Assembly: GCA_038496445.1 (NCBI GenBank)
Contig: JALMLS010000487.1
Location: forward strand, 186,001 to 250,000
Source of the DNA: Trichosphaerium sp. ATCC 40318
Taxonomy: Eukaryota > Protista > Tubulinea
Reading direction: 5' to 3'
Length of the DNA: 64,000 nucleotides
A program made the translations under genes and the position numbers. This document shows positions 1-48,500 of this stretch, piece by piece. The notes beneath the pieces were generated by a model. The model ran no database searches. It worked only from the letters and a program-made list of their open reading frames with translations, and was not told the DNA's origin. Within the stretch, counting starts at the first letter, position 1, and every line of letters begins with the position of its first letter.

Positions 1-3000
1 TTCTAGAGCTCTTGTACTGATAGAATTACGATCAAGTCGTGAAGAGTAAACGGCCATTCCCTTTTGATTGCATTAGCGCACCATACATCATCTGCGATGT
101 TAAACGTACCATAACACCAGGTATTACAATGATAAGAGCACCACTTCTACTGCATTTGGCTGGAAGACCAACAGAGAAAACAAACTCTCCTGAAAAGTCG
201 TGCATACCGCATGTTGCCATTAGAGACAAACAGTTGCGCACATACCGTACAGAGAAAACACGTTCGCCTAGATGGCGTTAGTTTGGGTAAAATTAAAAAT
301 GCAAAAAGATTTCTAGCGAAGAATGGTTTCGATCCATTGACCTTTGGGTTATGGGCCCAACACGCTCCCTGCTGCGCCACTTCGCTTTTTACGTTGTGAA
401 CTAAACGGATCGGAAAGTAGTCTTTCGAGACCAACGCAAAGACCCGTATTGACTTTACGTACCCGTCATTGGGTTAATACCGCCATTTGCCAAAGTTGCA
501 GCTGCAATCGACATGGTCCGTGTGCTCCATTCCATACAACAGCACTGAAAGAACATGTCCAAATCCATATTCAAATCTGCTTTTGGAGGAAAGGCGTTTT
601 CTTCTTGCTAAGCTTTGGTTTAGCGTTCTAGCAGACTAATAATAACCATTCGCACCATCATGTATGCTATTGCTTTTGCTTGTACAGATGCTCTTCGTAC
701 TTCAAGGTAAGCTGTATTGGAAAATGCAGGAGGAGAACCTAGGCGACTAATTAAATGTATTTGCTCAATTACATAAAAAACAACTCACCTGCTAGCTTCT
801 CATACATATCACGGATGAAAGAGAATCGCTACTCAAACGTCAACTTTGTTTCAAATGATTTCATGCCAATATTAACGTACATCACTATCTTCAAGGTCTG
901 GACGAAGCATACAAGCTGCAGTTATAGCTCCAGAGTCTGTCATTGGATTATGAGGTTTGTTATCTGAGTTAAGCTCCATTTCATTCCATCCCCTTCCACT
1001 TGGTTCACGACCAATATATTTATGGACATATTCTTCACCATGTAATTCCTTGAAGAAACATATTAGACTCAAACACTTTTTCATAAAGATGCTGTACGCA
1101 CTTGAGCAATACAGTAATTAAACGGGTAGCAACAATCGTCCATGACGACGTTAACCTCAGAATCACCATAATCAAATTGCTGACCATCAATAGAACAAAT
1201 GGATACGCCGTACTATAAAGTTGGTAAAAAAAATGGGCAAAAGAAAAGCAATTAAAAAAAAGGATTGTACCAAGTCGGTATCAGTCTTAGCATAACTTCG
1301 AATAAACGAAGAGTTAGCACCGCTTTGCATATTCTTTGTCTTGTTGTAGCATTGTATAACTGTTTCTGTAAATCTTGCCCAGTTAGGTACTATTAGTCTA
1401 CCAGTAAAAGCATTGTTTATCAAAGAACTGTACTAAAGAATAAGTCAGTTTCTCTGAACCAAAAACGAGATATGCCTACCGCCAGCTTTTGCTTGAATAC
1501 ATCAAAGTCAAAAAAATCTGGTAATTGTGATACTGTTGGTTTTAATCTCCTATCTTTACTCTTTATACCAAGAGTTGCCAGTATTTTAGTTAGAGTTTTC
1601 CTGGCACCGTAGTATTAGTAAACTATGTTCCAACAAAAAATAAATGTACCTTGACACTTTGCCAGTGCTTCCTACATCCAAGAAATTCCAGATGTTTGTT
1701 GCAACATCCACTGGTTCATTCTTACTTTCTGTTTGCTCATAGGCTTTTATTATTTCGAGAACTTCAGTGTGACCTTCACGCAATGCATCATCAAGTGGTG
1801 TGCCACCTAGAAATTTATATTAATAAAGAAAAATAATTCGTCAACTTTTGTTTGTCTTACCAAGATGGTCACATAATGTAGGATCAGCACCCATCTTTAG
1901 CAAATAGCTTACAATTTCAGTGTGTCCCTCAGACGCTGCTATATGCAGAGCAGAACGTTTATCGTAATCAACCTTTCAAGCAGAATTAGAAATTGAAAAA
2001 AAAACAAAACAAATTCTGTTGCTAATTTGTCTTACAAGATTAACAAGAACACCCCTGGCAATCATTTGTCTAACACGAAGGAAGTCTCCTTTTGCTACAC
2101 AAAACCAATATTCATGACAATTCTCCTGGTTTGTTACAGTAGTAGACATTATTGGATCAGCTGCTTTTTCTAACTCCTTCTCTTTAACTTTTCCGGCAGT
2201 AAGCCTATACCATACCAGTTAGAAATATGAAACGTTACCAATTGATGTCTTACACATGTGAGAACACGTCAAAACGATGAGAAGAGAAATGACGAACAAA
2301 CAAATCACAAAACCTTGACGAAGTTAGATGAAAAAGAAGTTGGATATCTTTACCTGTTACCACGAACACTATTTCCTAATTTATCCAACCTTGGAGAGAA
2401 TACACAAAATCCCTAAATGGTGATATTAGAAACATATACATACATTCAGACATACCATAACACCAGGTACAACTACTAAAAGAACACCTGAAACGCCTGA
2501 TTTTGCAGGAAGTCCAATTTTGAAATAGAACTCTCCGGAATAATCGTACATGCCACATGTCGCCTATACATAGTACAAGTGTTAGACGAAGCAATATAAA
2601 ATTATGAGTATCAATACCATTATCGAAAGGCAAGCACGGACAGTACCAGGCTCAAAAACACGCTATTAAAAACAATCAGAGAAAAATAGGAATGTATCTT
2701 GAAGCTGTACTTACACGATCTGTGACAGGGCATACTCCTCCGTTTGCCAATGTAGCTGCTACCTAAGTTTATTATTAAGGGTTAACCATATCTATCAAAA
2801 AGCACGTACAATAGCCATACGATTGCAGTCCATTTCGATAGAACAGCACATAAAATAAAACTCGAGTACTTCATTTAAGTTTGTAACATGCTCCGGAAAC
2901 GCTTCACGTTGTTTCTAGGTTGTATGATTACTATATATCTTGTATACTCTATTGTACCATCATGTAAGTTAAACACCAATTTCTATCCGCTGATCCACGC

Positions 3001-4362
3001 TCTGAGAGAAAAACAGATGTCGCAAATCCCACCTTTCGAAAGTACTGTCAATACTAACACAAAAAATGGTTCTATCACTCACTTTTCTATCACCACAACA
3101 TTTACTCCATACAGATGTTACGTAATCCCATTTCTAGAGTCCATCAACAACACTAAACAAAAAAAAAACATACATCTGCCATGCCTAGCTCAGGTCTCAA
3201 CAGAGAGGCTACCATAATAGCACCACTAGTATTATTTAGACAACTGACAAGAATGCAAAAAACTTAATACCTGTTGATGAGTGGGTTGTGAGGTAGACCG
3301 TCTTGATTAAGAACACGTTCGTTGAAATTCCTACCAGAAGGTTCTCGTCTTATTGAAAAAGGTCAATCATAGTACTTCAACATACAATTACTTACCCCAC
3401 ATGTTTATGTACTCTTTCTTGACCTTGTCTCTCGAGTACTGTACAGTACGTAATGGGTTTACTTGTTGATTGCACCTAGATTTCATCGTAAGAGATGTGT
3501 AAAAAAAACAATAAAAATACTAGCTTACAGAAAACTCTGCATCGCTGTCGCCAAGATTTAGTACTTGTCCATCAATAGTGCATACAGATACACCTTAAAT
3601 AGATATTAAACAGCTTGATAAAGTAGCTGAAAACCAAGTGAACTACAAGTTAGATTTTGCTTACCAAAAAGTTCAGGATCGACATTAGCTAATTGTGGTA
3701 TGTATGAGGCTACATCGCCACTCTTGCACTTAGAAGTCCTTGTGTAAATGCGTTTTATCTATTACAGAGTAAGTAAGCAATCCAATAGATAAAATAGCAC
3801 GAAGAAAACCCAAAAACAAAAGTGGAAGTTTTTTGTAGTTTTCTTGTTTGTATGTGAATTTGTACGAACAGTTTGGGCGAATGATTCATAGTCTGCTATA
3901 ACCAAATCATCTATAACTATGTTAGTACAATGCAAGTGTTTGGGCAAGTTATACCTGCCGCTAAAATAGGTATTTTATCAAAAAATTAAATTTAAACTAC
4001 ATGTACGTCTGAAAGCCCTGTTGATTAGAGTGCTTGTATTCAAGAGTTGCGTAAATTCTTCAAATGTAACCCGCGGACCAATTCGTAATGTCTCCAGGAC
4101 TCGTTTAATACGCGGATCCTCTTCATGGCATAAACCATGACCTTTTAGAACCTATCTTGGGTTAATCACTCTAGTATGTACATACTTTGTAATAAAAGTT
4201 TTCTGTAATCATCCGTTACTGTATACGTACGCTCAAAATTGCTTTTCGAGCAATCGTTTCATTTGTTGGGTCCTTTGCGTCAGAAAGAGAATCAAAAATC
4301 TGTCTGGCATTATCTGGACCTACAACACCATCGCCTTTACGCAGCCTTGGTGTTTTCCTCAT
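1..4362 (-). CDS. GLS: Multi-exon glutaminase (GLS/KGA-type) with internal duplication: active glutaminase domain, ankyrin repeats, EF-hand-like segment, degenerate second glutaminase domain; runs off window start
   Basis: Spliced translation from ATG 4362. Domain 1: [38 protein letters not shown]...[22 protein letters not shown]. Ankyrins: [28 protein letters not shown]. Domain 2: [39 protein letters not shown]. Confidence 0.93.
314..386 (-). tRNA. tRNA-iMet: Initiator tRNA-Met (CAT), inside glutaminase intron 268-462
   Basis: 73-nt cloverleaf AGCGAAG...CTTCGCT-A with CAT anticodon, A1:U72 pair, three G-C pairs in the anticodon stem and ATCGAAA T-loop (A54/A60), all eukaryotic initiator hallmarks; followed by a T5 terminator. 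Confidence 0.97.
417..426 (-). promoter_or_regulatory. Conserved upstream box GAAAGACTAC at -40..-31 of tRNA-iMet (also at 17141-17150)
   Basis: Identical 10-mer at an identical distance upstream of both tRNA copies, while the intervening 19 nt have diverged. Confidence 0.5.
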
Positions 4363-4703
4363 TTTCAACCGAAAGTGAAACCAGCGTTTGTTAAATAACT
4401 ATTTTTGTATGCGCTTGTAACGGACGTGTTGTTAACGTTATTGTGATTGTTTGTAGGTTAAGTCCAACAAAAACTAATGATAAATTGGGCCAAACTAAAC
4501 TTACTACCATTAGTGCCCATTACCACAATTCTTCACATCACAATTATACAGAAACAGTTCAACTTTATCGCGGTACAAAATTGTAAAAAATCACTCTTTG
4601 GCGACTGGCTGGACATGTATGCGTGCGTATTGAATTGGTGAGTTTAAACTCAGATAGGGAAATTACAAATCATTGATTTGAAGGTGTCATTTTCGATAAC
4701 GTG

Positions 4704-5515
4704 TCACTTTTTTATGGCAGCAATTAAATTTTGCAAGGCAACTGTCAAGGCTTCGTTATCACCATCATTCTGTATCTCAATATCCCATGGCGTCCTAGCA
4801 CAGTATGAAAAGAATATAAGGCGTATACCTAGTAAGTCGTACCAAGTGTCAAGAGCACATTCTGACGCTGCATCGTCAACACCAGAAACGAAAACCCATC
4901 TTCAAAAAAACCAATTACAAACAAATGAATTTTTTTCTCACTTCTATGCATACCCACGAGATTCACGAACTGTCTGTTGCGTCTTCACACGTACGAGAAT
5001 ACAGGTATATTTTTGTTTGAAGTATTGGAGGTCTGTGGGCCGTCTGTGGTTCAATATTAATAATCTAACTTTGCACCACTGTAATAATGCCGTACCTGGC
5101 GTCACTAACAATCCACACGTTTTTGGTGCTGTCTTTTGTAGCAAGTTTACAAAAGTATCCAGGATCAAGGTTACGTTTCTCCTCACCCCATCGAATCATA
5201 TCAGCACGGTATTTCTCTTTGTAAGGTCCTGCGCCCAATAGTTTTTGATAATCAAGGTTATGTTCCTGTACACGCGCTAAGAGAGCGAATATAGCGAAAA
5301 AAGACGTACCTTGGCGTAAGCGCCTTTCAGCGGACCGCTAAGCCTTACAACATCACAAGCCTCACTACCAAGCCTAATACACCGTTACAGGAGTGGAATA
5401 AATGTGTAGTAGTGTACTTTTTTTCCAATAGCTCTGTGATGTAGTCTTTACCACTTTTACGCTTGCCAGAAAATATAACAACTACTTTAGGTACAAAATC
5501 TGTAGCTGTTGACAT
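4704..5515 (-). CDS. PMVK: Phosphomevalonate kinase, animal (NMP-kinase fold) type
   Basis: IFSGKRKSGKDY P-loop, LSGPLK.AYAK, GPYKEKYRADMIRWGEEKR..DPGYFC, IVSDARRPTD, RGWVFVSGVDDAASECALD. Confidence 0.93.
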
Positions 5516-5737
5516 TTTGTGCAATTTGAAAATATCTGACTTACCAAACGGCGTGACGACCGAAAAAATAACTGTGGGTGTGTATGATAACATACAGTCA
5601 CGTTTGACAAGTTCAATGAAGGAACAACTGATTACTGACATGAAAATGACATTTAGTGCTTACTGAATGTTGTTTATTGGAACAGAGCGTATAGCGCCTC
5701 TGTGTACTGGGTTTTTTTGTTTTTAAGTTTTAGTTGT

Positions 5738-6394
5738 CTATTCTTCTTGTTGTGCAATTACGCTACCTTTGTTCTCAATAGCAAATTTGTACTTCAAACA
5801 AGCAATGAGTTGTCCATCGTCTGTTTTTGCTTCGTATGTTCCTGTGTAACCAGTTGCCTTTAAAAACCATTCATTAGAATAACTCGTAGCGGCCTAAAGC
5901 GCATTTCGTACAGAGATAGCAAAAGAAGGAACTGGAAGAGTGAGCTGAGTTGTGTAGTTTCCGGCTGGGCATGGGCATGCACATTTTGGAATGATTGGAG
6001 GGTTGCATACGTCACCTAATACGGTTTAGGATCGATAATGACGCAAATCAAGAAAACTCATCTTACCTTTATAAGATTGTACGGGTAAACCATCAAGAGC
6101 TACTGTAGTGCTGTATGAGCCATTAGAAATAACCTTTGCTTTTCCTACTGTGTATACGGTGACCTTTTTACCGGCAATAGCAGGGTCTACATGGTAGTGA
6201 GAAAGAAACAACTACGGCGTACACTGCAAAGCTTAACTTCGTAAAAAAAAGTAAGTCGACGAACTCGTACAAGGCTTCATGTATACGTCAGTTACGTCAA
6301 ATAGCGGATTTTGGTCTTGTTTGCAAAGTTTATATTTAAATGCGCCAAGGGCAACGGCTAGGAATGCAAGAGCGATAAGAAGCAGCTTTGTCAT
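5738..6394 (-). CDS. Secreted ML-domain (NPC2 / PG-PI transfer protein-like) lipid-binding protein
   Basis: Signal peptide MTKLLLIALAFLAVALG, P.P..AGK.VTV, GDVC...CPCPAG.Y, GQLIACL. Confidence 0.8.
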
Positions 6395-6459
6395 AATGAA
6401 CACTGTATTTTGATGCTTCGGTTAGAGTAGCAGTTAAGTCTCAAATTGGAAATTTCGAA

Positions 6460-6910
6460 TGACTAGTTTCAGTTGCAAATTTTATTCATGCTGGCAATCA
6501 TTGATTTGAATTCTCGTCTGGCTAAAACCCAAATCAAGTGTACAAGTTGCTCAACGCCTCTTGCCCTTCTTGTAAAGTTCTGTGGCATTTTAACCTCACT
6601 TGTGCTCAGTATCAGGCTCAGCCAATCCGTATTAAGGGTGCTCAAGATGTGGAAGTTGTAGCAATTGCCAATACCAACGGCTGGAAAAGGTATGTTCTCC
6701 TTCCTCTCTTTCCCAATCTAACCACTAAACGAAATAGGTGCCTTCGTGCCATATTGTAATAGAACGCAACCAAGGCTGCAAACACATGACATGTAGATGT
6801 GGGTAAGTATACAATATACCATTGTTGATAGCTAAAACCAAATAGTAAACAGTTTTGCTATAACTGCACAAAGGATTGGACTTCAAACCATTCATGCAAC
6901 TGACAATAAA
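6460..6910 (+). pseudogene. Frameshifted IBR-RING2 (RBR E3 ligase) fragment
   Basis: CPSCKVLWH..LTC.QYQ and WKRC(P)SCHIVIERNQGCKHMTCRCG..FCYNC motifs, requiring frameshifts near 6560 and 6743; no RING1 or clear start. Confidence 0.7.
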
Positions 6911-7107
6911 AACTATCTCACTCTTTCAGTTTGGTTGAGCCAGGATCAGCTACCCTTCTTGTATTTGTAGAAATAAATACGAGCATAAAGAACACGTGAC
7001 GAAACTAATCTTTACTTCTTGTTCCTTCGTTTTGCTGTGAAAGTAACAAACAATCTACGCAAACTGCAAGCAACTAATTGACCAACAGTTTTTAACAAGT
7101 GGTCAAA

Positions 7108-8920
7108 ATGAACAAGCCACAGGTTCAGTTAAACAAAAACGAAACAATGTTCGCTTAACTGTACCATAGAACAAGACACGGAGACCGGAGACAATGCGTG
7201 ACATATCTATTAAACTACCTACAGGATTACGGATTGCAGCTAAGGCATGGGGAAACAGAAAGAGTAAAGTACGAATTTATTTCACATAGTTCCTTTTAAA
7301 AATAGTGTAATACGCGTTAAAACATGTTTAGACGAAGATTTTGGCGTTACATGGGTACATTAAGCAAGTTTTAAATTTACTCTTGTTAAAAGCAACAGGT
7401 GGATGGATAATTGCGGTACATGGGATGCTATGGCTCCGTCTCTCGCACAAAGAGGTAATTGTTAGTAAAAAAGTGTACCCGCTCGTAGCAAACGCTTAAA
7501 CGTTCAAAATACTCACAAAAAAGCGTATTGTTGAGCAGTTGGGAAATTGTAGATTACCATTTTTTGTCTAAGTATTTTGACAATCCTCTTTTTAAGGTGC
7601 CTACGTCGTAGCTATGGATTTTGTTGGTCATGGGCAATCAGACCATTTACCTCAGCACTCTGAGTATTTTGTAGTGCTACATGCAGCTACGGTAAGATAT
7701 ATTGACGTGACAACCGTAGTTTCCTTGTTTGATTGACACTTACAAAATATGTCTTTTTTGTTTTTCATTAGACCCTGTTGTTTCATGTTATTTTTAATGA
7801 TTGTTAAAGGTTATACAAGTTCTAGAGGCATTAGGCTGGGATTCGTGTCATCTATTAGGTCATTCTATGGGTGCTGGTGCGTATTATTTGGAGTAAATAT
7901 CAGAAAAAGAACATTTAATCACGTGCCAGTTACGTACTTATAGCAACTCATAATTGTATTTCAGGAGTTGCTTCAATAGTTGCTGGAACACTCCCTGCAG
8001 TTGTAAGAACGTTTTGTGCGATAGACCTTTTGGGTGCGAATTTGTGTTTTGACGCAGGCAGAATGTATTAAACTTTCTTTCAAAGGTGTATACACTGCTG
8101 AGATGACTGATAAAACAGCACCTGTTAATCTAGAACACGCCGTTAAACAAAGAAAGAACTTATCCAAACGGGTGCCAAAGGTAAGCATATTGCTGGTAGC
8201 AGATATTAAAGAGTATTGTTTCCCAATATTGACATAGTTTAGGTGTACCCTGACTTAAAACAAGCAGTAGAAAAATTACGAGGTAACAATCCAACGCTGG
8301 CTAAGCATACAGCAAAATCTATAGCAAGACGTGGAACTGTACAAGTTGAAGGTAAGACTAATATAAAGAGACGAAACTAGGGAACGTTCTCACGCTGTTT
8401 TACTATTTAGGCGGAGTTTGCTTTTGTCATGATTATCGCTTGGTCGGACATTCTCTTATGCGGTACAGAGAGGATGATATGATTCATTTTATGGAACGCA
8501 TAGCTTGCCCTACATTACTCATATTAGCAGGTACGTGTAAATGCATTAAAACAGTTGTTTATTTGAGTTTCTCATTTTATTCTTGTTTTATTGTACTTAA
8601 CATTTTTTAGGTAGCACTGTCGATCGTTGGAAAAAAGCAGACTCAAAAGCAGAAAAACTTGCTAAAGAACAGAGAGACGCAGGAAAGGAGGCAGATGCTA
8701 AAAATACCTTCTTAAAAATCTACAACAAGCGAATTAAGTCAGTTTCTGGAATAACTGTGAAAGTATTACCAGGTAAACAAATCAAGCCCATTGCATTTAT
8801 AATTATCTTAACTCTAACTGTAATGTTCGTATAGGTGGTCACCATGTACACTCTGATAAAGCTGAAGAATGTTTACCTTTTATACTAAATATGATTCAAA
8901 AGACTGAGCCTAAACTATAA
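7108..8920 (+). CDS. Alpha/beta hydrolase, serine hydrolase-like (SERHL), probably peroxisomal
   Basis: LALHGWMDN, DFVGHGQSDH, GHSMGA nucleophile elbow, PGGHHVH; ends with the PTS1-like tripeptide PKL. Confidence 0.88.
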
Positions 8921-9600
8921 AAAAAAAAGCTTGTGAAATATAACGATAACTTCTCACAAACGTCAAATGAAGTCTAAAACTGGGCTATTTAAGATCCATA
9001 GCATTGGCAAGGCTTGTCAATGCTGTTATCAAAACCTGGCTACTGACGTTCGAACAAGACTTCATAGGACAGTACATTTTGTTCTTCATGGTTTTTTCTG
9101 CGATAAGTCGTTTGAACTACAAGATAGGTTTTTTGAGTCTCTGAGAGACAGTGTATTAAACCTTTACTACGTCCACGCTGTTAAGCACAGCATCAGATAA
9201 GTGGAGATCCAACGTTTGTTCACAACACTTGGGAGGTAACATGCTAACACAATCCCGCTTGAAACAATCCCTACACATGCGAAAGTGTTATTCTTCAAAA
9301 CAGCTAAAGAATTTGGTTCCAAACCGTTAGACATTGTTTGCACCAATAGTGACTACAAGGCGTAGAATGGCATGACGTCGACTCTTTACAGACGAAGCAA
9401 GTTTGTTTAACCCAAGTGAATTTGTTCATACTTTGAAAAGCGTACACTATCCTATAGCAATTGGACAACGTGAGTTAGTGTAAAGAGAAGACTTTTAGTG
9501 CTTAATAAACGAAGATTTTGACTAGACAAACTCTCTCAGAGAATAACTTTTTTTTTTCGCACTACGCAGTATAACGCGCTTTATTTAAACTAGCAGCAAT

Positions 9601-14040: not shown

Positions 14041-14213
14041 TTCTTGTTGCGTTCACAAACAGTAACCAAGGCTACGAAATTATGGTCTTTCTGTAGCGCT
14101 ACAGATACTTCAAGCTAATATCTCAGTACGACAGTTGTATGTTATCAAGATATGTCTCTCACACGTACCATAGCGCTCAGTGGTTTAGACGACGAAACGG
14201 AAGGCTGTGACTT
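14041..14213 (+). pseudogene. Inverted, frameshifted duplicate of an exon segment of the LRR-BTB gene (25381-25551)
   Basis: About 160 nt align to the reverse complement of 25381-25540 with about 6 substitutions and a 1-nt insertion (counted by eye). Confidence 0.85.
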
Positions 14214-14328
14214 TGTCATAACCACAAGTTTACTCTAGAATGCTCTTTTTTTTTATTTTTTTGTTATTATTCTTTGTTAAGTTAAAAATTGTAACATAGT
14301 TTGGAAGGTGAGTAGTGTATACACAAGA

Positions 14329-17300
14329 CTAAGCAAAGGCGCCTTCAAGGTACTCAGCCATTTCTCTTTTGTGTTGCGCTGTTGAAGCACAAGCAGGAGA
14401 TGCAGCAACATGACGTCCTACAAGCAAAAGTGAGTAAAATAAATCAATCGAAAAATGCGGGAGTTAGGTTTTCTTTTTTTGAGTTTCCTACACGTACCCA
14501 TGTAACTGATATTGGCACGTTCTGGTTTTTTACTATCACGAAGAGCGGAGTCAATATGAGGCTTGATGTATGTCCAGGCACCCATATTCTTTGGTTCTAA
14601 AAAGCACAAAGTAAGTAAAAGAAAAACAAAGAAAAACAAGTTAAAAAAAAAAAAATCCAAAGACGGTCGGTTGTAGTACCTTCTTGAACCCACATGAACT
14701 CAGCGTTGGCGTATTTGTCACCAATATTTGTTACCTTTGTAAAGTGGAAAGGACATAGTTGCTCAATACGAACAAGTGCAACATCGTTAATATTATTCTT
14801 TTGGCGGTAGTTATGTAAATCGTAAAATACTTTTCCAGTACAGAAGATAACACGTCTAATCTTATCTGCAGGTGCAAGAGCTTCATGCTTGACGCTACCA
14901 GGGCCAACAGAATCATCAATAACATGGCTAAAGAAAACAAAAGTCAGTACAACTCCAAGACTAATCACAAGAACTTCGAAGAAGAAATTAAGACTTACAA
15001 AAATTTGGTGTCATCACCAATGTCGTCAAACTCATCAAGGCGAGAAGTAGCTGTACGTAAGATACTCTTATGTGTAAATACAATCAAAGGTTTTCTATAT
15101 TCACGGTGTACTTGTCTACGAAGAGCATGGAAGTAATTAGCTGGGCAAGAGCAGTTTACAACACCCATGTTGTACAACTAAGAAAAGGGTTAGTAACTGT
15201 ATTGGCAATCCATGCTTATAAACAACGTACTTGACCAATATTCTTCTCTTGTGGATCAGGTTTGAATTCAGGATCGGAATCGCATAATTGAAGGAAACGT
15301 TCAACACGTGCAGAAGAGTGCTCAGGACCCATACCTTTAAAGAAAATTTTGAGAAACAGAATATCAAAAAAAAGAAGTCTTGAAAGTTGACACGTTGTGA
15401 TCAGGATATCATCGTACCTTCGTAACCATGTGGTAGTAGTAAAACGAGACCGCTTTGACGGTACCATTTAGCTTCTCCAGCAGATAGAAATTGATCAATA
15501 ATGACCTGAGCGCCGTTTGCGAAATCACCGAACTGTGCTTCCCAAATGACAAGTTGCTTTGGTGATACTGCAGAGTAACCCAAAGAAAATCTATAAACAC
15601 AAGTATTAGGAACAAGACACTGAATACATTACCACAGAGGTGCATAATTTTAACCAAAATTAAAGTGATAAACGTACCCAAGGCAACCAAATTCAGATAG
15701 TGCGCTGTTAGCAACAACCAAGTTTTCTTTCTTGTCTGGTGTATTTTCAAGAGGTGTTATAAGGTTCCCTGTTTTTTGATCGTGTACAACAGCATGCCTA
15801 TGAGCAAAGGTACCACGCTCACAATCCTGGCCTTAACAAAGCGTAAGTGTTAAATAAACCAAGGTCTTCAAAAAACCAAAAAAACAATAGAAATGAAAGC
15901 AGTACCAGAAAGATGCACGTGTACACCGTCTTGTAATAATGTAGAAAATGCAAGAGCTTCAGCGAAACCAAAATCAATATTTTGACCAGATTCAATGTTT
16001 GTCAACCTAAGGAAGGAGTAAGGCAAATAAAAAACTAGGTCTAACAAAAAAAGGCTTAAGCAAAAAGTTCCTTCTATGAACTCTAAAAACATAAACGTTG
16101 GTTGGTGACCTGTGTACCTGCTGGCGTATACGCGCTTAATCCTTGAGTGTGGACTGAAATCTTGTGGAATAGTAGATATGGCTTTACCAACTTGTTTTAA
16201 TCGCTCAATATTGACACCAGTAGTTTTAATTTCAGCCTTGCTCTCTGGCGCTATTTTATCGTCAGTATGAAGCAAAAAAAAGCACTATGCCTGTAATGAC
16301 AAATTACGGCACAGGAGGAGTACGTCAATCAATAATTTGTCATTACACATTCAAAGTAGTTCGTTTTGTCAACGTACATTTAAAGTCTTTCCATTTAGAT
16401 TCTAACCAATCGCTCAGTTTGAATGAAGATTGTTCCTTAGCTTCTTGGTGTGCATTGTTAAGTTTTGTGTGAATATTCTTCTTGAGGTTAGAAACTTCTT
16501 CTTCAGAAATCATGCCTAGAAACCAGTTAACAATTACTCTTCCCAAAAAATATAACAGCAAATTGAAAAACTTTTCTGATCGAGGTACCTTCATCAACCA
16601 ATTGTTGAGCATACTTCTTAGCTACGGATATGTGCTTGTGAATCTTTGAGTACCTATTATTGATTAATACAACAACATATCACTCAAAGATAAAACAAGC
16701 CAAAAGAAACTTGTGGATTTTGCGTACATCATTGGTTGTGTGAACATAGGTTCGTCACCTTCATTGTGACCAAATCGTCTGAAAGCGAGTTAAAGCACAA
16801 CGCGGGGAAATTAATAAACACATACCTGTAACCGACAATATCAATAACGGCGTCTGTTTTAAACTTTGTACGCCAAGCTACAGCGAGTTTGAAACAATGA
16901 ATGACGGCTTCAGGGTTGTCTGCATTTACATGGAAAATTGGAGCCTCTGCAGACTTTACAACATCTGTACAGTACTAGTGAAACAAATTAACCGAACAAT
17001 TACAAAAGAAAGTAAGAATAAAATGCAAAAAGATTTCTAGCGAAGAATGGTTTCGATCCATTGACCTTTGGGTTATGGGCCCAACACGCTCCCTGCTGCG
17101 CCACTTCGCTTTTTACGTTGTAAAACATAGCCGTAAAAACGTAGTCTTTCAAAATTAATAGATAGACCCACGTTGACTCTGCGTATCCAAATAATTTGCG
17201 TCTCTCAACTCTCAAAAAACATTGCGTACGTTTCCTCCTCGAGCATCAGTTGTATCTGTAGTGAAACCAATCTGGTTGTTTACAATAATGTGTATTGTAC

Positions 17301-36353: not shown

Positions 36354-37042
36354 CTTTTTATTTTTATTTGCTATGCAAATTAAGTCATTGCACGGAAACG
36401 TTACAGCGCAAACAATGTTTGGGTTTTTTCCCGTCTGTTATTCTTCTCAGTCGCTCTTCAAAACCTAAGGCTGTATTTTGAAACCTATTGATTATTCCAA
36501 AGTTAGAGATTGCTCTCGAAATTCCACATTGTACTGCTATTGTGAGGTTTTCACAAAAACTCAAAAATTAAAATGGTCTAAAACCTCATTACATACATTA
36601 GCCAACATCGTGTTTAGAGGTATCATACCAACACCAACACCTCTATGGTGTATAATTCTGATTAATTACTGATTTGTAGAAATTTCATACTTTTTCACCC
36701 ACAACAAACCAAAGTTCCGTGTGCGCTTGATAAATGGCTGTCATTTATTTGAGTTACTAGAGATGCATAGTAGAAGTGTCACATTCTTTCACAGCATTGT
36801 CACATTTGTTAAATACTTCGTGGATACAATCTATTCATTTGTGGCTACCGCTCTATAATTTTAATACTTCGAAATTCTGTTTGCAAAGGCAAATTGTAGT
36901 TGTGTGCTGTGAAAACACTTTCTTCGTTGGATATCCAATGAGGAGTCAGCCGACTTCTTCGTAACTTCATTGTTCATACGGTGCATAAGGCCCAGTAGGA
37001 CATGATAACACCATTTGGGGCACGCTACGCTACCACCTCTTT

Positions 37043-37487
37043 TTGTTTCATGTATCCTGTTACTCAACTAGTTTGCGAAACTGGAGAATAAACAATGAAG
37101 TAAGTATGGTCCTTGAATATACCATAGGAAAAGAGCTGTTGGCACCTACAATCACTAAAAACCCAATCTCCACGTACTTGAAAAAGCCAAAAGTTGCGTC
37201 CTTGTGGAACGCAGTTGGTAAAATATCTGAACAACAACGAAGGGCAAACAAAAACTACCTACAGCAAGAAAACTATTGTTGAGGAATCAAATATTACAAT
37301 TAAAGCACAGAAGCAAGCAGATGCAAAGCAACATGATATAATAACCAAACTTGAGAAGTATATTGTTGAATTGCAAGAAAAGAGCAAACCAGAAGAACAA
37401 AAGCAAGTCAATTCAACCCAGAGAAAAGGATTGCTGGAAGAGAATAGCACTATTAACCGAATCGCAAATCTTGAGAGCACAAATTAA
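37043..37487 (+). pseudogene. Relic of the 3' end of a paralog of the ankyrin-ART gene
   Basis: TYSKKTIVEESN..KQADAKQ..ITKLEK..NRIANLEST resembles TYTQQKKNIHVSN..RQANA..IVKLEQ..ARIAYLESN at 9601-9890; frames broken. Confidence 0.45.
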
Positions 37488-37637
37488 CACAGATAGCTAT
37501 CTGCTATACCTTAGTTAAACAAAGTAACCTTAAGATTCTTGCATCTTGAAAGAGAAGTAATTACAAGGCTACTATCTGACTTTTTATTGCTTTATTGTTG
37601 TATAGGCTAGCACTGAAGCCTTTATTTATTGAGATAC

Positions 37638-39252
37638 TCAAGAACGCAGAGTAACATGGAATAGTGGTTCAGTTATGTACTTGTTGACAGCACAAAAGTG
37701 TGTTGATTCATCGTTCGACACTTCTGTTTCATTCCACTTGAGCTTCCCAAAATAAGTAGCAAAGAGACGATAAAGGAACACCATTGCTATTTTCTTTCCT
37801 GGGCACGTGCGAGGACCTACGCTAAAAGGCGCAATATCGAACTTTTGTTCGTTCTTCCACCTCTCTGGTCTGAATACATGAGGATCACCAAAGCGTTCTT
37901 TAGAAGCAGTGATACATCCATGCAACGCAATAACTAGAGCCCCTTTAGGAATAAAATACCCACCGATTTCTCCATCCTCAGAGGCTTCGTGTTGGACATA
38001 CAATGGAGCAGTTGCGCGATATCTGAAGGTTTCTTGAATGACCCAAGTCAAATACTCGATGTTCTTCAGTTCGCCAATATCACATGTTGCTACATCGTGG
38101 CCCTTGAGTGCTTGATAGAGCTTCTCTTGAACATCTTGATGTTTAGCGAGCGCTGTTAAAGCTGTTTGCAGTGTCTGGGCTGCTGTATCAAAACCGCCTG
38201 TGAGTATCTCAGAAGTCATTGAGCTTGCTCTTATCTTGGGTTGAACTTGTTCAAGTATAACATCAACAATGTATTTGTCGTCTTGTTTTCTTGATTTAAA
38301 GATGTTGCTGATATGTAAATCACGCTTTTCACAGTTCTCTAAGTACTTCTTCTCTCGTTGCTTTTCAAGAAACGCTAGCGCTGGGATGTAGTCTCCAAGG
38401 AATGGCCTTGAAAATTCTCTCATAGCTTCGCTTTGCGTATGAAACAAGCTTCCAACATCGTTGTCTTTACCAAAGCCATTCTCACCGAACAAGAGCTGTG
38501 TGATTGAATCAAATGATACCGTGGATGTAATGCTTTCAGCTCCGATGGTCGATTTATTCTTAGCGTGCGTGACAAGGTCATTGTAACTCCGTTGTACTTG
38601 TTCAATATGAATATCCACTATCTTTTTCATGTTTTCTTTGTTCACAACGTGGTTACTCCAAACCAAGCGTGCCGCTTTATGATGTTCTTTATTTGCGAAT
38701 AAAGTACCACCAGTTGGATCTTTACCCCTAGAAATGCATTTAATTCAGTATGATGAAACTATCACTTGTTGAAAAAAGCCAGAAAAAATGCGGATTTTGA
38801 AGTGGCGTAAACCCGCGATTTTCTTTTTTGACTTTGTTTTACTGACAGTCAAAAAAACACGTGCTTTTTCTGTTTTTTTGTAGCTTTTGTCCAAAAAATC
38901 CAAAAAAATAAAGGTGTACACCGTACCATCCGTGTTTAACTGGAATAAGCGTTTTAGGTCTATTTGAGAACGTTTTAGATTTCTTAACAAAGGCTTCTTT
39001 AATTAGAGGTAGAGTGCATAAAAATACTGCCGTTCGCGTTCCCATATCCAAACTAAAGATACCATCGTATTTTTTTGCCATTGAAATAACCTGGTTGCTA
39101 AATTGCGCTGGATCTCCAAGTAAGTGAAGGTGACCGATTATTGGTAATGATAAAGGACCAGGAGGAAGGTTTCTAGTTTTTCTTGACCTGTTTTTTACCC
39201 ATGTTGCTGCAACAGCTACAAGTACAAGTGCGAGGATTATTTCAGCAATCAT
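37638..39252 (-). CDS. Cytochrome P450 (two exons)
   Basis: TM anchor + LPPGP..LPIIGHLH, I-helix GGFDTA, ETFR, FRPERW, heme motif FSVGPRTCPG. Confidence 0.95.
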
Positions 39253-39479
39253 AGGTTGCGAATAAGTGTTTTATAACGCGATACTGTGAACGGTGATTGT
39301 TTGATTTAGCCTAAAGCACATTCTTTGAAATCTTGTCATGGTACAACGCATCTTCTGTAAGGCTACGAAGGTTGGATACATGGAAACTACGCTATTTATT
39401 AAGCAACGTGTTCAGTACAGAGCATTACATCTTCAACTTAGTAAACAAGCGCTACTATAAGCCAAAATAAGTTTCACCA

Positions 39480-39620
39480 GCTATAATTGACTTGATCAAC
39501 ATTACAAATGAGGTTATAAAGGCATTACCTGGTGTGCATACGATTAGTTTGGCCAATCAAATACAATAAATGAGGGTATTAAGGTTCTTGTTTGAGTTCA
39601 TACGATTGAGCTTCAAAAGG
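39480..39620 (+). pseudogene. Degenerate fragment of the VHTINL/TDEGLKAL LRR family
   Basis: ATTACAAATGAGGTTATAAAGGCATTACCTGGTGTGCATACGATT resembles the repeat unit at 54200-55150. Confidence 0.5.
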
Positions 39621-39754
39621 TAAGGTTGAGACAAAAAAAAGGAACATAAAACAATATTAAATAAGTCTATTTACAACGTGACAACACTTGTTTGTGCGAG
39701 GGAATCATTTTTCAAAATCAATCAATTGAATAGTAGTTGATTATCCCAGTCTAT

Positions 39755-42330
39755 TTAAGTATCATTATCTTTGATGAAGAGCAGGTCATCTGGACCGGAC
39801 CATCTCTTTCTGTGTTTTTTCTTCTTTTTTTTCGAAAAAAATTGTTGCGAGAATTTATGAATATTTTCTGTCTCGCTTGTTGTTGTTTTTGTTCTTTTTG
39901 TGTTATTGTGACATATGCTTAGATCTTTTCAACTCACTTCTACGTCTTTTTTTCTTGATTTTAGCTATTTTTTGTTGATCTGGTAGCCTTGGATCATCCT
40001 TTTTTGAAGAACGACGTAAATGGATACTTAGTGATAAACGCTTCCGTCGTTTCTTGACACGAACTTCATCTCTCACACGTGCAGTAGTAGTACCTGGTCT
40101 ATAATAAACAATGAGCTAAAATAGAAAGAAGTCTGAAGACCAAAAAAAAAAAAGAAACAAGACTCTTTTCAATTGCTTCTACGGAATACCCTACAGTATT
40201 GTTTTTTTGAAATATTTATCATAAATTCATTCGGTATATTTAGTAGCAAGTGATAAAGAAATTGCAGAAAATTTAAGGAAAAATCAAGGGTGCAAAGTAC
40301 TTCGCGAAAAAATCACGTGGGGTTTTTTAAAGGTTATTGTTGGATCCAATGCTTTTGCTAGTTTGTTGGAAATATTTTCTGTACGTACTCAAGATTAGAT
40401 ACTGCTTTAGATAGAACAGGTTTTCCAGATGGTAGAGATTTTTGTTTTGATACATTAGGCGAGTGTAAGCGAGACATTGTATTTCTTCTTTGTGATTTTA
40501 TTCTACTATGACCTGGTCCTGTCTCTCTATGACTTGATATATTTGGTAATGTTGTTATATCTGATCTTTTAGCCATTGTATGTAGTCTATCTTGTTTCAT
40601 ACGGAAAGGAGATGTGAAATCTTTAATTTCTTGTCTTGATGTGAAAGTTCTTTGACTCATCATTCTTCTGTTTAAAAAAGGTATCTCAACAAGTGCGAAA
40701 CGCATTGTACTTTCCTTAAGAATACTTGAGTATAAAAGAAATAAAAAAGATAAAAAAATCAACGTGGTTGATTTTTGGAATTGACTCAGATTATTGATAC
40801 GCTGTACTATCGCTATTTGTTTATCACGTGATGACGAACCATGAATGCTTTATATAAGCTAGTTGACGCCGTTATCGATAATATGAGTCAATTCCTTGGG
40901 TTTTAGACAACGTTAAGATGAAATGTGAGGGGTACCTTGGTAGAATCAAACATAACACCTGCAAACAAAAGTTAGATTTTGTGGTTGGCTTGCTGCATAT
41001 TAAAGCAAAAGCTTTTTGATGCTATTTTCAAGTAAATATTAATTTTTAGTCACGTACCACGACAATCAAACCAGTCATCATCATCTATTGTTTTATCACA
41101 TACATCACAATAACGAAACCCACAAAGTTCAATTTTAGGTAAATTCAAATGTAAGAGTTGAATAGGCTTCTCTGGAAAGGACGCGCAAAATTCTACGACT
41201 ACAACAGCTGCCTCTGGTGCATCATATAATCTTAGTACTAGCGCAAGGTCAGCAAGTGAACAAAAAAAACACAAAATCAAGCGAGCGCTCAGTGATTTCT
41301 CCAAAAAAGAAAAACAATGAGCGAACGGCAATGATTTCATTAGAATACGCACCAGGATTCGCTTCTACTAGACCTAGACCTGTATAAAGCGATGCATAAC
41401 AAACAAAATGTGCTCCTCTAGTATTTACTATACGTTTAATCTCATCTTCATCAACTTCAAACCTGTTTAAATAATCATAAGACAAAACCAAAAAAAGGAA
41501 AAAAAACAAAAAAATAATGATGCAAAAAAGGCACGCTCCGGCGTCGGAGTTTAGTATCTCGGTTTCTCTCATCAGTGGGTAACTAAATAAATACCATACC
41601 TTCCTGATGGCCACAATGCATTACTCTTTGTCATTCTCAAGTTTGTGAGTTTGCTCTGGGAAGTAGCGAAATATGTTTTTACTCGACCTAATTTCTTTGC
41701 AAATCCTTCACACAAAAATTAATCTCCTTTGTTACATAACAAATACAAAAGGAGTAAAATAAAAACCAAGATGACGCAATTCGCATAATTACGATAGTGT
41801 GTCGCGAAATTGCTTTTTTTTCTACTGGCTGTTGGTATTTTTGTATAAAAGCAAAAACCACGTGATTTTCTTGTACATACAGCGATGTAATCACGTGATA
41901 ATTTCATAATTAAAATGACAATTTACCAGGTCTTCAAAAAATTCCAACTATCTAATTACGTACCTGTGAAAGCCTGCTTTGTACTGATACGTTTCCTACG
42001 TGTCGCTCTAAATGATGTAAGGGGAAGTACCATACAACAAAAAAAATTGCTTTCTAGATCATACTCACGTTTGAAGGTAACGTATAAAAGCTTCATGGCG
42101 TGAAGATACACCAGGCCAGTTCAAACAAGGATTGTATTGCGTAAAATTATTTTCCTTCATAGCCTGCACATAAGGTATTAAGATTAAAGTAGTTTAAAAA
42201 CACTTACATTGAGTATAACTTCTGCTTGCTTTTTGCCGTAGTCAACTTGCAAAACAGCTTCTGTTCTAAGACTCAGTGGTCTCTCTTGAAGCATCCAATC
42301 TGTTTCGAAGCTACTTACTTCTCTAAGCAT
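39755..42330 (-). CDS. Hypothetical multi-exon protein with basic low-complexity C-terminus
   Basis: Series of open exons flanked by GT/AG; no family recognised; some junctions unresolved. Confidence 0.45.
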
Positions 42331-42505
42331 TGTGATAACGTGATTTTTTAGTTTTGTTCAGACCGTCAGCCTGCCTTGCTTAACATGTTTTTTTGATTAA
42401 GTGTTGAACACATTCATCTGTGAATTGGCAGTTTAAACTCCCACCTCCACCCAATCTCTGCAGTTTTCGAAGCAAAGACACTACACAGTGTGATGAACAC
42501 TATAA

Positions 42506-45500
42506 ATGGCTAATAATAAACCAAATAGATCCAGTTCAGCAGTGCCTGCGTTTAGCGAACATCAATATGATCAGTTTACAAACAAACAAATACGTAAATA
42601 ACAAGAGAGCTTCATTACAGTGGCCACCGTTTTTTTTTTCTTTCAGTTTTTTGCCAACTCATCCGTTCTTCGTTTTTATAAGTAATTCTTGTAGTTGATG
42701 TTAAACAACGTATTACCTCATCATCAAATAAGCGTAATAGTTTATCTGTTGCGTCAGGAAAGCAAAAAAAGTTAGAAATACTAAGAGCTTGGATAAGACA
42801 AGAAATCCAACAAACGCTTATTGTACAATTTAGTTAATTTAATATTTTTTTTGTTCTTTTTTTTTTGTTCTTTTTTACAAATATGCGTTAACCCTTGTTT
42901 GTATGTAGCCAAAACTGAGAGGATTGAAAGCTTCGATCTTTAATATAACAGAGCTGGATGATGCGGCTTCTTTAAGTGTTACCATAAAGGCAATGGTTGG
43001 CGTACGTATTTTTTGATTTTGAGTGATAATTTTGGAAAAAAAACCAAAAAAAAAAACGAGGTTTGAGGCTCCTTCGCCGCTTATTTCCGTTCAATACGCC
43101 TTTTAACGATATATAGGAGATAAATAAATGTGTAACTTGGATAAAACCAAAGTCATCGCCACCTGTGAACAACAGAAACAAGTTGGTACGCTTTTTTTTA
43201 CTACAAAATTTCTGTAACGATTTTTTTATTGTATTTTATTTTTACTTTATTTAAAAAATCACGTGACCGTGCTCTGGTCACAAAAAAAAAACGGAAAGCC
43301 ATCCCAAACCATATCAATTAGTTTTCTTCTCTTACTTTTTTTGTAAAAAAAACCAGACTGCAAGTTTGAGGGTAATGACGAATACTACGGTTAATCTGGA
43401 ACTTGCGATGGTAGATATTGCTGAAGCGTCAGTTGAAAAAATAGTAAACAGTAGAGACGTAGTACTTGTCGCAACTGTCATTAAAAGCTTGTCAAAGCTC
43501 CTAACGCAGTTTGAACCTGTACAAGTACCTTCTTTAATTAAAGAAGAAGATAAAATCAAAGAAAAGGCAAGCGGTGGATCAGTGCCAAGGGATATTAGAA
43601 AAAGACCTCTTGGGTTTACTCCAATGGCTGGGATTGAAGATGCTCCTACGATTATACCGAACAGTGGAAAGGCTAAAATTAACTTGGTGCCAACAGGCAT
43701 GAAAGCGAAGAAGCCTATCCTTATCCCAACGTCCCTCGGAAGCAAAGACAACTCGGCTTCAAAACCAAAAGTCAATCTCACTGGATCACCTGTCGTTGGA
43801 AGACAAGCAAGACAACCAACAATTGTGGATAACAAGAAAGGTGTACGGACTCTTGTACCAAGAAACCTTCCGGGAAGTTCAAAGGCTGTAACTTCTAAAG
43901 CTGGGGCTCCTAAGGCAGGATTTCGCTCCACTCTCGTGTTTAGTGAGACACCAGAACAAAAGCGAAAGAATAACAGAAGAAGCATTTTTTTCGAACAAAA
44001 CAAAGGCAAGAAACCAGAAACCTCTTCTCTTGCAGCGCCTAAACGAAGAGATTTGCGTAAGAGCGTAGAATATGAGGACAAGGCAGCATTGAAGGAGAAA
44101 TTAGCAAAAGCACGTCTTTCCCACTAACGCCAGATTGTTGAAAGTCCTACTTTCTATTTTAGTTTTTTTCCTTTTTTTTTTTCAAACCCGACCGTTTTAA
44201 CGATGCTGCAGAGCGATCCCAAGAGTCAAAAACCTAATAAGCGCGCTTCTTTCAGAGCTAGGTAATATACACGTGTTAAAACCTTTGCAATCACGTGATA
44301 AAAGGATTAACCGGTTTTTTAGAACAATCTCTTCTCCAGAGCTGCGCGAATCTCAGAGAGTGCTGGAATATGTAGAAACGCTCAGTTCAGGAGATTCCCT
44401 GGATTCCACAGGCAAAGAGCACTTGTTAGAACTACTTTCTACTCTAGGCGGTACTAAAATCAACGAAAACGTACTAAACGTAACACAGACAAGAGCGAAT
44501 AGGGTACACAAACAACTAAAATCAGTTTTTTTTGATTTGGGATTTTTTATCAGTTTAAGCACTTTTTTTGACATTTTTAGACCGCCTCCAAGCTACGAAA
44601 GCGTGTCATAAGGACGGACTCAAACAACTTTGAACAAAAACGACGTGTAGTGTGGTAAGCGTTCATCCATATTTAATTATAACGTTTAAGCACGTAACGC
44701 AAGGGAATAAGGTTAATTTACGTTTTTAGGGACGAAATAATAAAAGCAATCATCGTAAAGCACGGAGGAAACTTTAAAGCAGCTGTACGTATACCCTTAT
44801 CTCGCAAGGAAGCAATTTTAAATTTAATCGAAACATTTATTATGAAAACAGTTGACTTTTTTTTTTTGATTCATAAAACGCCCAAATTGAAAATTCCGCC
44901 ACTGTAACGTGTAACCTATGGCCCAGGTCGTCTCCATGGAGGATAAAGGGCCCTCAGGAAGTCAGAAGCTGCGTCAACATCTAATTGGGGTAAGAATGCG
45001 TTTTATTGCCTCAATTGATCACTAATACCTTGAAGCGGCGAAATAGACCCGTTAATGAGCAAGCACAAGGATTTAGCTCTCCTTCGCAATCACCAAGGTC
45101 ACCTCGAAATGCGGTAGTTGAATCGCCTAGGACACCTCGTAATCGTGGCTCTATGAGAATGCAACCTCTACAAACTCAACCCGCACCAGTGCAGCAAAAA
45201 TCTATAATTCTTCGTGTACAGATTCCGAGCCTTAACCATTCAGGCACACAAACAAAGAAATTCGCAGAGGACACAACGCTGAAGGAAGTACTGGATCGTA
45301 TGGTTAAATTAATACCAGAAAAATTCAAAACAGCAACGTACCACTTGTATCACAATGGACTGCGACTTACAGGCGAAACACGTACTCTTAAAAGTCATGG
45401 TTTAAAAGATGGTGGTACGTTTTCTTAATATAACGCCTAAAAAACGCTCTGTTACATCGTTTACGTTATGTTTAAACGATAATTTGACAAACTGACGCCA

Positions 45501-48500
45501 TAACCGACTTTTTCATTTCTTTTTGTCATTTTTTTGTTTTCTTTACGTCGTTTACGTTTATCTAAGCTTGTTTCTAGCTGAGATTAAAATGCAAAGAGGA
45601 CTTGAGTATGAAATTAGGTTAAAACAACACCCAACAGCAAAACTTCCTTTGCTTGTTAAAGGAGAGAGAACAACAGTAGCTGAAGTTGTCAAACAATGCT
45701 CAAACTGGGCTTTCAAAGGTCATAGACCTGGGACATACCATTATGCGCTTTTAAGAAAGTCTAAGCGTAGAAACTCAAAGTCTCATGGACCTTTGTTACC
45801 ATTATCTGAGAAGGACACATTTTTCAGTAACAAACTACGTGTACAGGTGCGTATGCTTGAGAAAGAGCAGCAGAACAAAATGCGTTCATTGTTTAACACT
45901 TGGTTGTTAAACCGCTTTTTGTTTCTCATGTTTATTTGTTGCGTTGTCTTTATTGATGTGTTGTATTAGGATGAACTACTACTTTGTGCTGAGCCGATTA
46001 GCGGTGGAAGCCAGATAGCATTAGAATTAGTTATAGAGTATTCACCTGTCGATTTAATGGAACAAACGGTACGTTTGTATTTTTTTTGTAAAACCAAAAG
46101 TCATTTGTTTTTTTTGTCTTATTAAAACTCTGTTGTGTAGAAATTAGCACAGACCAAGTCAGGATATTTAACAAAATTGGGCGGTGGTGCCGGTGGAAGT
46201 AAGAATTGGAAAAATCGATTCTTCATTCTGTCAGATGAGAAATTCGAATATTGGCGCGTACGTTAATAAAGAAATACCAACGAAACGAAAAGAAAATAAA
46301 AACTTGACAAAAGTATTTTGGCATTTTTGCCAACAGTTAAGGGTTCTGAGAACTCCTATTCACTTGTTTAAAGAGTGGTTGTTTTGTAGTTATTATTTTA
46401 ACACGCTAAGATATTATACGTAGGATGATAAGGAGTATCAAAAACAAAAACAAAGTAAAGGCGTGTTGTATTTGGATGATTACGTAAGCGTTGAAATTGT
46501 AGAAGGAGATGCCAGTGAATACGGAAAGGTTGCTGCGAAAGAAGCACTTTTTGCTGTGAATACATCTTCTAGGACGCTGGTGATGTATGCTACTTCAGAG
46601 GCAGAGGTATGCATAGTTAGATCTTTAAAGCACTTTACAATTTTTTTTTTTTTTTTTGATTTGATGTTCTCTGACGGGGTGTCATTTTAGAGATCTGATT
46701 GGATACGAAGACTGAAATTTCTTGGTGAATCAGCACGTACAAATTTCCAAAGCTTACCACAAACCGAGAGAGAGCGTATAATAGAGAATAGAAAAGCGTA
46801 AGTTGTTATTTTTTATTTCTTTTCTTTTATTATTCTTTTTCCTTTGCATCTCTTCTAATCGTTACCATTTTTTTTAGTATGGTTGGTAAAAACTACAAGT
46901 CTGGTGGTAATGAACGTGGTCAAATATCTACTCCTTTCCACGTGAAAAAGGGCGTAAGTAAAATGCAAACAAAAAAGTTTTCGGCACATGCGTATCAAAA
47001 TTCTTTTTCATTTCCACAAGTAGCTTTGTGCTTACACAGAATTTTAGGTTAGCGTTAACACTAATTTGGAATGGGAGATTGGTGGCACAAGCGAATTTGA
47101 TCTTACGACAAAACTTGGTGAAGGGTAAGCTCATTCTCATTTTTTTTTACAGTAGAAATACAAGTGTCGCTTGTTTTAGCTTTAAACCGGTTTTTGCTAT
47201 TTTCGATCCAATCACTTTTGAAAATATGTCTATTACTCATGGATACGGCCATACAACCATGAAAACTCCGTGTCTCTTTCCGAACCGCGAAGATAAGCAT
47301 GGTATGGCCCTGCCAGTACTTGGGTCCGTGAGGACCAGGGAACGTAGGGTGCTGTATTCATTTTACTTTTTTTTTCCTCCACAGTGGTGTTGTAAAACGC
47401 TCACACGCGCCTGGGCGGCTTTGTTTTCAGTTGTCGCTCAAAATTTTGAGATTGTTTTTTTTTTGTTCAAAGGAGAAAGTTCGATGTTGTTTTTTTTAGT
47501 TATGTTCTGTACTGATAATTATTTTAGAGCTTGTGGTGCTGTTTATAAAGCTACACATAAGATGTCTGGAGCAGTTCTCGCTATTAAAGAAATTAAACAA
47601 GGAAATAAGGTAATATTACTAGCGTCCAAAATCTCAGCCTTGTATTTCATTTATTAACTGTTTGCGTAGGCTGAGCAAATTTCGCTTGAAAAAGAAATTA
47701 ATATTCTGAAGAAGTGTCGTAACAACTTGATTGTTAACTACTATGGTGTAATCATGAACGACGATTGTGTCTGGGTATGCTCACGTGCAAAGAACTGCAA
47801 TATTTCATTATTCCTCATTTTTTTTTCTTTTCTGTTGACCATGACGTTGTAGATTATTATGGATTACTGTGAAGTCGGTTCAGTAAAAGATGTGATGAAA
47901 AAGAATAAGGATACTCTAACCGAGGATCAATGCCTATACGTTTCACACCGTTCTCTACTAGGTACTTTTTTTGTTCAAAAACTTTTTAGCGCTACGTTGT
48001 TCTGTTGGTTATTTCTATTGACACTTGTTCTTTAGGTTTGATGTACCTACATAGTAAGGATATATTGCATTTGGATATTAAGAGCGCAAATATTTTACTT
48101 ACTGGTGATGGCATGGTTAAGCTAGGTATGATATGATTCAAAACAACTTTTCTTTTAAAATGTCACGTGATTCTAACGATTTTTTTTTCAGCCGATTTTG
48201 GTGTTTCCGCTATCGTAGAGACATCCCAAAAATTTGTTGATGCTGACGACTATGTTGGTAGCCCTCTGTTTATGGCACCTGAGGTTATAAGAAAAGATAA
48301 GTATAACGACAAGGTAAGCAAAAAAACCATAAACAAAAACATTAAAATTGAGCTTGGTTCTGTATTCTTTCGTATGTTTTCTCTTCACATGCTTACTGAT
48401 GTATAGGCCGATATCTGGTCTCTCGGAATTACAGTAATAGAGATGGTAGAAGGTATTTGATAATTATACTGAGCTTCGCTGACATGTTCAAGGCCGCCCT

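Follow-up and report, generated by a model that had tools for sequence, protein, structure and literature searches.

Genes that RNA polymerase III (Pol III) transcribes and that are nested within genes transcribed by RNA polymerase II (Pol II) are already known. In this work, we have analysed three such genes, two for the initiator transfer RNA (tRNA) and one for 5S ribosomal RNA (rRNA), in a stretch of 64,000 nucleotides (nt) from the protist Trichosphaerium sp. ATCC 40318 (contig JALMLS010000487.1, positions 186,001 to 250,000; hereafter the window), and have compared them with small RNA genes elsewhere in the same assembly. In Caenorhabditis elegans, functional tRNA genes are likewise nested in the introns of protein genes, where the host context can affect them, and 56% of the intronic ones lie in the host orientation, according to the passages of PMC4999229 drawn on here; intronic 5S genes are not discussed in those passages. 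In contrast to that 56%, which is near a random orientation, the sense share found here is complete, both for the clearly intronic tRNA genes (14/14) and for the intronic 5S genes (23/23). Dispersed 5S families are present in Schizosaccharomyces pombe and Neurospora. Yarrowia lipolytica also carries single-copy 5S genes dispersed outside its ribosomal DNA unit (PMC2566860). The likeness lies in the scattered single copies, of which the present genome holds at least 32. The difference is that such families are described as intergenic, or as fused to tRNA genes in Yarrowia, whereas the family here is almost entirely intronic.

Intronic small nucleolar RNA (snoRNA) genes lie strictly in sense in their host introns, have no promoter or terminator of their own, and are trimmed from the excised intron. 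The genes described here resemble them as small RNA genes that occupy host introns in sense only, but differ in having retained an oligo-T terminator and, upstream, a conserved element. Another related case is the MIR in the first intron of mammalian Polr3e, which is also a Pol III unit in a Pol II intron with orientation-dependent interference; there, a single antisense short interspersed element has been kept as a brake on its host, whereas antisense nesting is absent here (PMC5358760). Neither a 5S family housed in spliceosomal introns nor a strict sense rule is reported in the literature that we have searched, although absence from that literature is no proof of absence.

We consider it rather probable that the three window genes are ordinary, self-contained Pol III genes, which lie co-directionally in introns of unrelated Pol II genes, and that antisense copies have been lost by selection. 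The search of the 64-kb window with ARAGORN and with Rfam at the gathering threshold returned exactly three RNA genes, namely two tRNA-Met(CAT) genes and one 5S rRNA gene. They and their host introns are as follows.

314-386, minus strand: initiator tRNA-Met (CAT), copy 1; ARAGORN and Rfam RF00005, 57.6 bits
17038-17110, minus strand: initiator tRNA-Met (CAT), copy 2; ARAGORN and Rfam RF00005, 57.6 bits; identical to copy 1
47241-47360, plus strand: 5S rRNA gene; Rfam RF00001, 93.7 bits
268-462, minus strand: glutaminase host intron of tRNA copy 1; 195 nt, phase 1, GTACGT..TAG
16975-17229, minus strand: 2-oxoglutarate dehydrogenase E1 host intron of tRNA copy 2; 255 nt, phase 0, GTACGC..TAG
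47125-47527, plus strand: protein kinase host intron of the 5S gene; 403 nt, phase 2, GTAAGC..TTTTAG

The defining marks of eukaryotic cytoplasmic initiators are an A1:U72 pair, an anticodon stem with three consecutive G:C pairs, and the T-loop residues A54 and A60. As the Rfam alignment shows, the window tRNA has A1:U72, three consecutive G:C anticodon-stem pairs, A54 and A60, and the T loop GGAUCGAAACC; the letters read AGCGAAG../..CUUCGCU in the acceptor stem and UUGGG/CCCAA in the anticodon stem, with a GGG/CCC core. Judging from this alignment, both genes are of the eukaryotic cytoplasmic initiator type. With the flanks counted in, the two copies are 99% identical across 101 nt. The 5S gene is full length (RF00001 model positions 1-120, cut-off 38 bits), and its sequence is identical to 23 other genomic copies.

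The host introns were assessed by protein searches of the host genes, exon by exon. The Pfam Glutaminase profile continues over intron 268-462 (160-199 | 201-266), and the E1_dh profile continues over intron 16975-17229 (138-173 | 179-227). Intron 47125-47527 divides the glycine-rich loop of the kinase as GEG|ACGAVYKA in phase 2, just where the initial annotation had placed the split, and the downstream exon matches Pkinase from position 12, weakly. As the reading frame or the Pfam matches continue across each of them, the three, which all lie exactly at the positions given by the initial annotation, should be real GT-AG introns; this is confirmed strongly for glutaminase and E1_dh, and weakly for the kinase. 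Each RNA gene lies on the strand of its host gene (3/3). That is, the initial claims that all three Pol III genes sit in sense in GT-AG introns, and that each has its own oligo-T run and the strand of its host, were borne out by ARAGORN, Rfam and the continuity of Pfam match or frame.

In addition, our gene finder recovers exactly the same three host introns when RNA genes are barred from the exon state. Without this masking, it places false exons on the tRNA and 5S genes, so gene predictors would misread these long introns unless the RNA genes are masked. Compared with a usual intron, the host introns are longer by a factor of 3-8: the median intron of the window is 67 nt, and 141 of the 185 predicted introns are no longer than 100 nt.

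The conserved flanks of these genes, which include the candidate promoter elements and the terminators, are listed below.

387-455, minus strand: promoter-like 5' flank of tRNA copy 1, with AAGTCAAT at 448-455, GGGTC at 441-445, GAAAGACTAC at 417-426 and CAACGTAAAA at 387-396
17111-17186, minus strand: conserved 5' flank of tRNA copy 2, including TTTGAAAGACTAC at 17141-17153
296-313, minus strand: 3' flank of tRNA copy 1, with a T5 run at 303-307 and a further T4; conserved in 6/6 copies
47200-47240, plus strand: 5S upstream element (-41 to -1), which departs slightly from the family consensus TTTTCGACCAAACCACTTTCAAAAAT
47361-47375, plus strand: 5S terminator directly 3' of the gene, TTTT, two other bases and at least T8

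In all six initiator tRNA copies of the genome, the roughly 70 nt upstream of the gene contain AGTCAAC, GGTC, ATTTTGAAAGACTAC and CAACGTAAAA, always equally spaced from copy to copy, while the sequence between these blocks differs among the copies. The T5 run starts seven bases past the window tRNA. In the glutaminase intron, the 5' splice site abuts the first conserved upstream block. The initiator copy that lies outside any intron shows the same conserved flanks as the intronic copies. For the 5S genes, the block from -41 to -16 is kept at a fixed distance in 25/25 independent loci, an AT immediately before +1 is common to these loci, and the family terminator consists of TTTT, GC and a T run, with +1 to +14 near invariant in the 25 loci. 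Beyond -45 to +135, the flanks of the 5S loci are unrelated to one another. Nested genes keep a distance of at least 69 nt from the donor and at least 39 nt from the acceptor, so that the upstream element, the terminator and the branch region can be accommodated. We infer that the nested 5S and initiator tRNA genes look like self-contained Pol III units, because the conserved upstream blocks, specific to each family, and the terminators are kept also in the non-intronic copy.

U6 and signal recognition particle (SRP) RNA genes use another promoter, with CCACAA near -55 and TTTAAAA near -30, and U2 genes have the CCACAA box only; a scan of the window for the U6-type promoter (CCACAA then TTTAAAA) found none. 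As for other tRNA genes, several of them (loci L037-L043, L053, L057 and L060) have in common a TTTTTGG(C/T)(C/G)G-like motif, located some 45-55 nt upstream, and a CAA that immediately precedes the mature 5' end.

Taken alone, three of three genes intronic and in sense within a single window is only suggestive, as the gene finder assigns 48-62% of the non-coding DNA in the window to introns and the corresponding p is about 0.013-0.03. We have therefore examined the same RNA families across the 70.3-Mb assembly, where, besides the 5S copies given above, the initiator tRNA occurs 6 times and the tRNA hits number at least 68. For each sampled locus, the RNA gene with 1.5 kb per side was parsed by a custom two-strand gene finder. 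It combines a Markov coding model of period three with splice-site matrices and explicit intron lengths, and its training, which used no labels, drew on the window together with the sampled loci (264 kb). The model learned the donor AAG|GTACGT and introns of ~60 nt. To classify a locus, we compared two optimal parses, one constrained to have the RNA gene inside an intron and the other constrained to have it outside. Duplicated loci were collapsed to independent loci, except for those of U2. Since the gene finder does not see the strand of the RNA gene and scores intron and intergenic sequence alike, it cannot generate a sense bias; it also does return intergenic calls where the RNA genes are intergenic. 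The results by family are given below.

5S rRNA, 25 independent loci: 23 clearly intronic and sense, 0 antisense, 2 ambiguous; introns of 253-727 nt, median 358 nt
Initiator tRNA, 6 loci: 5 clearly intronic and sense, 0 antisense, 1 copy in a divergent intergenic gap; introns of 195-255 nt
tRNA-Trp, 4 loci: 3 clearly intronic and sense, 0 antisense, 1 ambiguous
Other tRNAs, 26 loci: 6 clearly intronic and sense (Ile, Arg-CCT, 2 Asn, 2 Thr), 0 antisense
SRP RNA, 2 distinct loci: 1 clearly intronic and sense, 0 antisense; a 466-nt intron
U6, 7 independent loci (8 sampled): 0 intronic, all intergenic
U2, 12 sampled loci: 0 clearly intronic, 10 intergenic, 2 in ambiguous long gaps

The intronic location of the 5S genes is far above the intron share of non-coding DNA (23/25, p 3e-10 to 8e-13), and that of the initiator tRNA genes is above it as well (5/6, p 0.004-0.013). 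Of the other tRNAs that are not clearly intronic, about 18 are intergenic and the rest lie in doubtful long gaps, so that about half of the 36 sampled tRNA genes are intergenic. With 14/36 clearly intronic (p 0.03-0.2), the tRNAs overall are near the intron share and at most weakly enriched in introns; the intronic fractions of 5S and tRNA genes differ clearly (Fisher p 4e-5). The initial annotation had proposed that introns may be the systematic home of Pol III genes, to be judged against the intron share of non-coding DNA. This holds for 5S, which exceeds that share well, and for part of the tRNAs, which as a whole are about proportional to it; it fails for U6 (0/7), and SRP RNA is divided (1/2). 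The orientation, which by chance should be 50:50, is 37 sense to 0 antisense among the classified nested Pol III genes (p 7e-12). Actually, the window is one corner of a genome-wide layout, in which introns are the home of the 5S genes and of part of the tRNA genes, but not of the U6 genes.

Outside the window, the Pfam match continues over the host intron at six loci: NIF phosphatase (2-29 | 36-64), the 6PGD NAD-binding domain (86-124 | 127-157), actin (222-340 | 345-402), MIF4G (41-100 | 102-163), the CAF1B propeller (310-355 | 358-383) and SH3. The recognised hosts thus include UPF2 (MIF4G), a CTD phosphatase and CAF-1 p60, and the 5S hosts are functionally diverse. The flanking exons of five other loci (L003, L004, L014, L058 and L065) gave no Pfam match. 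By eye, and as a lead only, the hosts without Pfam matches look SNF2-like, ABCE1-like, kinase-like and RecQ-like. Several 5S hosts (L007, L008, L004 and L009) seem related to RNA or the ribosome, namely UPF2 and, by eye, NMD3-like, ABCE1-like and EST1/SMG-like genes, though the sample is small.

How could such a layout arise? If each nested gene consists of an internal promoter, an upstream element specific to its family and an oligo-T terminator, then units of this kind may land, or be copied, into non-coding DNA, and would survive only at sites where no Pol II promoter is harmed and no head-on encounter with Pol II occurs. The surviving places would be sense positions inside introns and intergenic gaps between two 3' ends. 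An active antisense Pol III unit would block the elongation of the host, so antisense nested copies would be removed by selection; moreover, with an antisense copy of an abundant RNA, the host pre-mRNA would be complementary to that RNA. In the intron of a mammalian reporter, a Pol III-transcribed MIR lowered host expression when antisense, but not when sense (PMC5358760). On our analysis, the sense-only rule appears best explained by selection. The initial suggestion of interference between Pol II and Pol III is thus reasonable in that the data fit its avoidance through co-directional nesting, while a regulatory use of it is not favoured.

We have also observed that most of the intergenic tRNA, U6 and U2 genes are found between convergent neighbours, in 3'-to-3' gaps; for the tRNAs this is 13 of about 19, against an expected quarter. 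This bias would fit a wider rule, that is, survival where no Pol II promoter is disturbed. The layout offers a natural experiment on template sharing between Pol II and Pol III, with U6 and U2 as internal controls outside introns. With it, one can ask whether selection against head-on collisions of Pol II and Pol III, or against double-stranded RNA formed with an abundant RNA, is strong enough to shape gene order, and whether 5S expression can depend on host transcription.

Several points weigh against this explanation by tolerance and selection. It leaves the excess of 5S over tRNA genes in introns unexplained, and a reading in which 5S needs host transcription is therefore kept alive. Strict sense orientation is also shown by host-dependent RNAs processed from introns, such as snoRNAs. 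A single 39-nt pattern of joined exon-exon DNA for the OGDH intron, scanned in metagenome contigs, gave no match. As for the samples, loci without Pfam support were classified by an ab initio model trained on the same 264 kb, and the gene finder fuses certain adjacent genes into one. For the tRNAs, the sample was drawn from the highest scores of a list that is itself not exhaustive, 68 hits from 3648 candidates, and it includes no tRNA of the Pro family.

Among the alternatives, dependence on the host survives best, although we regard it as unlikely. In its general form, 5S and tRNA would be cut from the Pol II pre-mRNA intron by RNase P, RNase Z or exonucleases, or host transcription would open the chromatin for them. 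For the 5S family in particular, dependence on host introns would mean maturation from Pol II introns, as perhaps for some tRNAs too, or Pol III firing only together with host transcription, and to this we likewise give a small chance. The complete lack of antisense copies is the signature of intron-processed RNAs, the 5S genes are intronic well beyond the intron share of non-coding DNA, and host promoters influence the expression of intronic tRNAs in C. elegans (PMC4999229). On the other side, every copy has its upstream element at a fixed distance and its oligo-T terminator, which an intron-processed RNA would not need, and the initiator copy outside introns has the same flanks. To our knowledge, no pathway for making the 5' ends of 5S rRNA from an intron has been described, which also speaks against this alternative. 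If it were true, 5S output would be tied to Pol II activity, a mode of 5S expression that has not been described before. We have also considered a snoRNA-like, intron-processed class for these genes and hold it to be unlikely, given an own upstream element and T run in all copies.

Next comes a mobile-unit origin, which is possible as a history but which we hold to be quite unlikely as the explanation. Here, insertions would have enlarged or created the host introns, and the bias would come from an insertion mechanism preferring transcribed DNA and one orientation, not from selection. The short host introns of tRNA genes (~200 nt) consist of the gene flanked by about 85 nt on its 5' side and about 42 nt on its 3' side, or roughly a 150-nt unit added to a 50-nt intron, and the flanks of the two window copies are alike from about -76 to +20. 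The window also offers a possible empty site. Two tandem glutaminase paralogues, fused into one gene by the gene finder, occupy 1-4362 on the minus strand, and the upstream one (about 2350-4360) has a 52-nt intron without a tRNA (2663-2714), 5 nt off the position of the tRNA-bearing intron. However, the two intron positions are thus not identical. At the 5S units no target-site duplications were found, since the longest flank repeat is 4.4 nt against 4.6 nt in controls with shuffled pairings, and there are neither conserved ends nor a poly(A) tail. The conserved unit includes a non-transcribed upstream element, which argues against copying through RNA. Introns of transposon-borne or introner type are not supported either, as target-site duplications and conserved ends are lacking.

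That Pol III genes are simply spread by non-coding length, with the window as a small-sample accident, is very improbable. The modest p for the window by itself and the near-expected intronic fraction of the tRNAs would agree with chance, but the 5S locations (p at most 3e-10) and the orientations do not. Chance is rejected for the location of 5S and for orientation, and is viable only for the location of tRNAs.

Finally, the coupling of initiator tRNA supply to glutamine and 2-oxoglutarate genes raised by the initial annotation, by which initiation capacity would follow nitrogen or carbon status, is hardly credible: both window copies do lie in such genes, 16.7 kb apart, but they seem to stem from a duplication of the unit within this region, the contexts of the other four copies are unrelated (one is in a gene of the actin family, one in a kinase-like gene, one in a gene that could not be named and one in an intergenic region between divergent genes), and the 5S hosts are diverse in function.

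Some further observations concern individual loci. A tRNA-Lys(TTT)-like family (L046-L051) has conserved flanks on both sides and no T4 terminator, and lies in long non-coding stretches; it may be a tRNA-derived repeat and not a set of working genes. A 139-nt 5S variant with a 19-nt internal duplication occurs in three copies (L030 on contig C199, C252:41589 and C252:61245), of which L030 also lies in sense within an intron and has the usual terminator and upstream block. On contig C81 (about 225.9-228.5 kb), three minus-strand genes, one for 5S and two for tRNA-Trp (L017, L091 and L092), occupy three separate introns within 2.5 kb, possibly of a single host gene.

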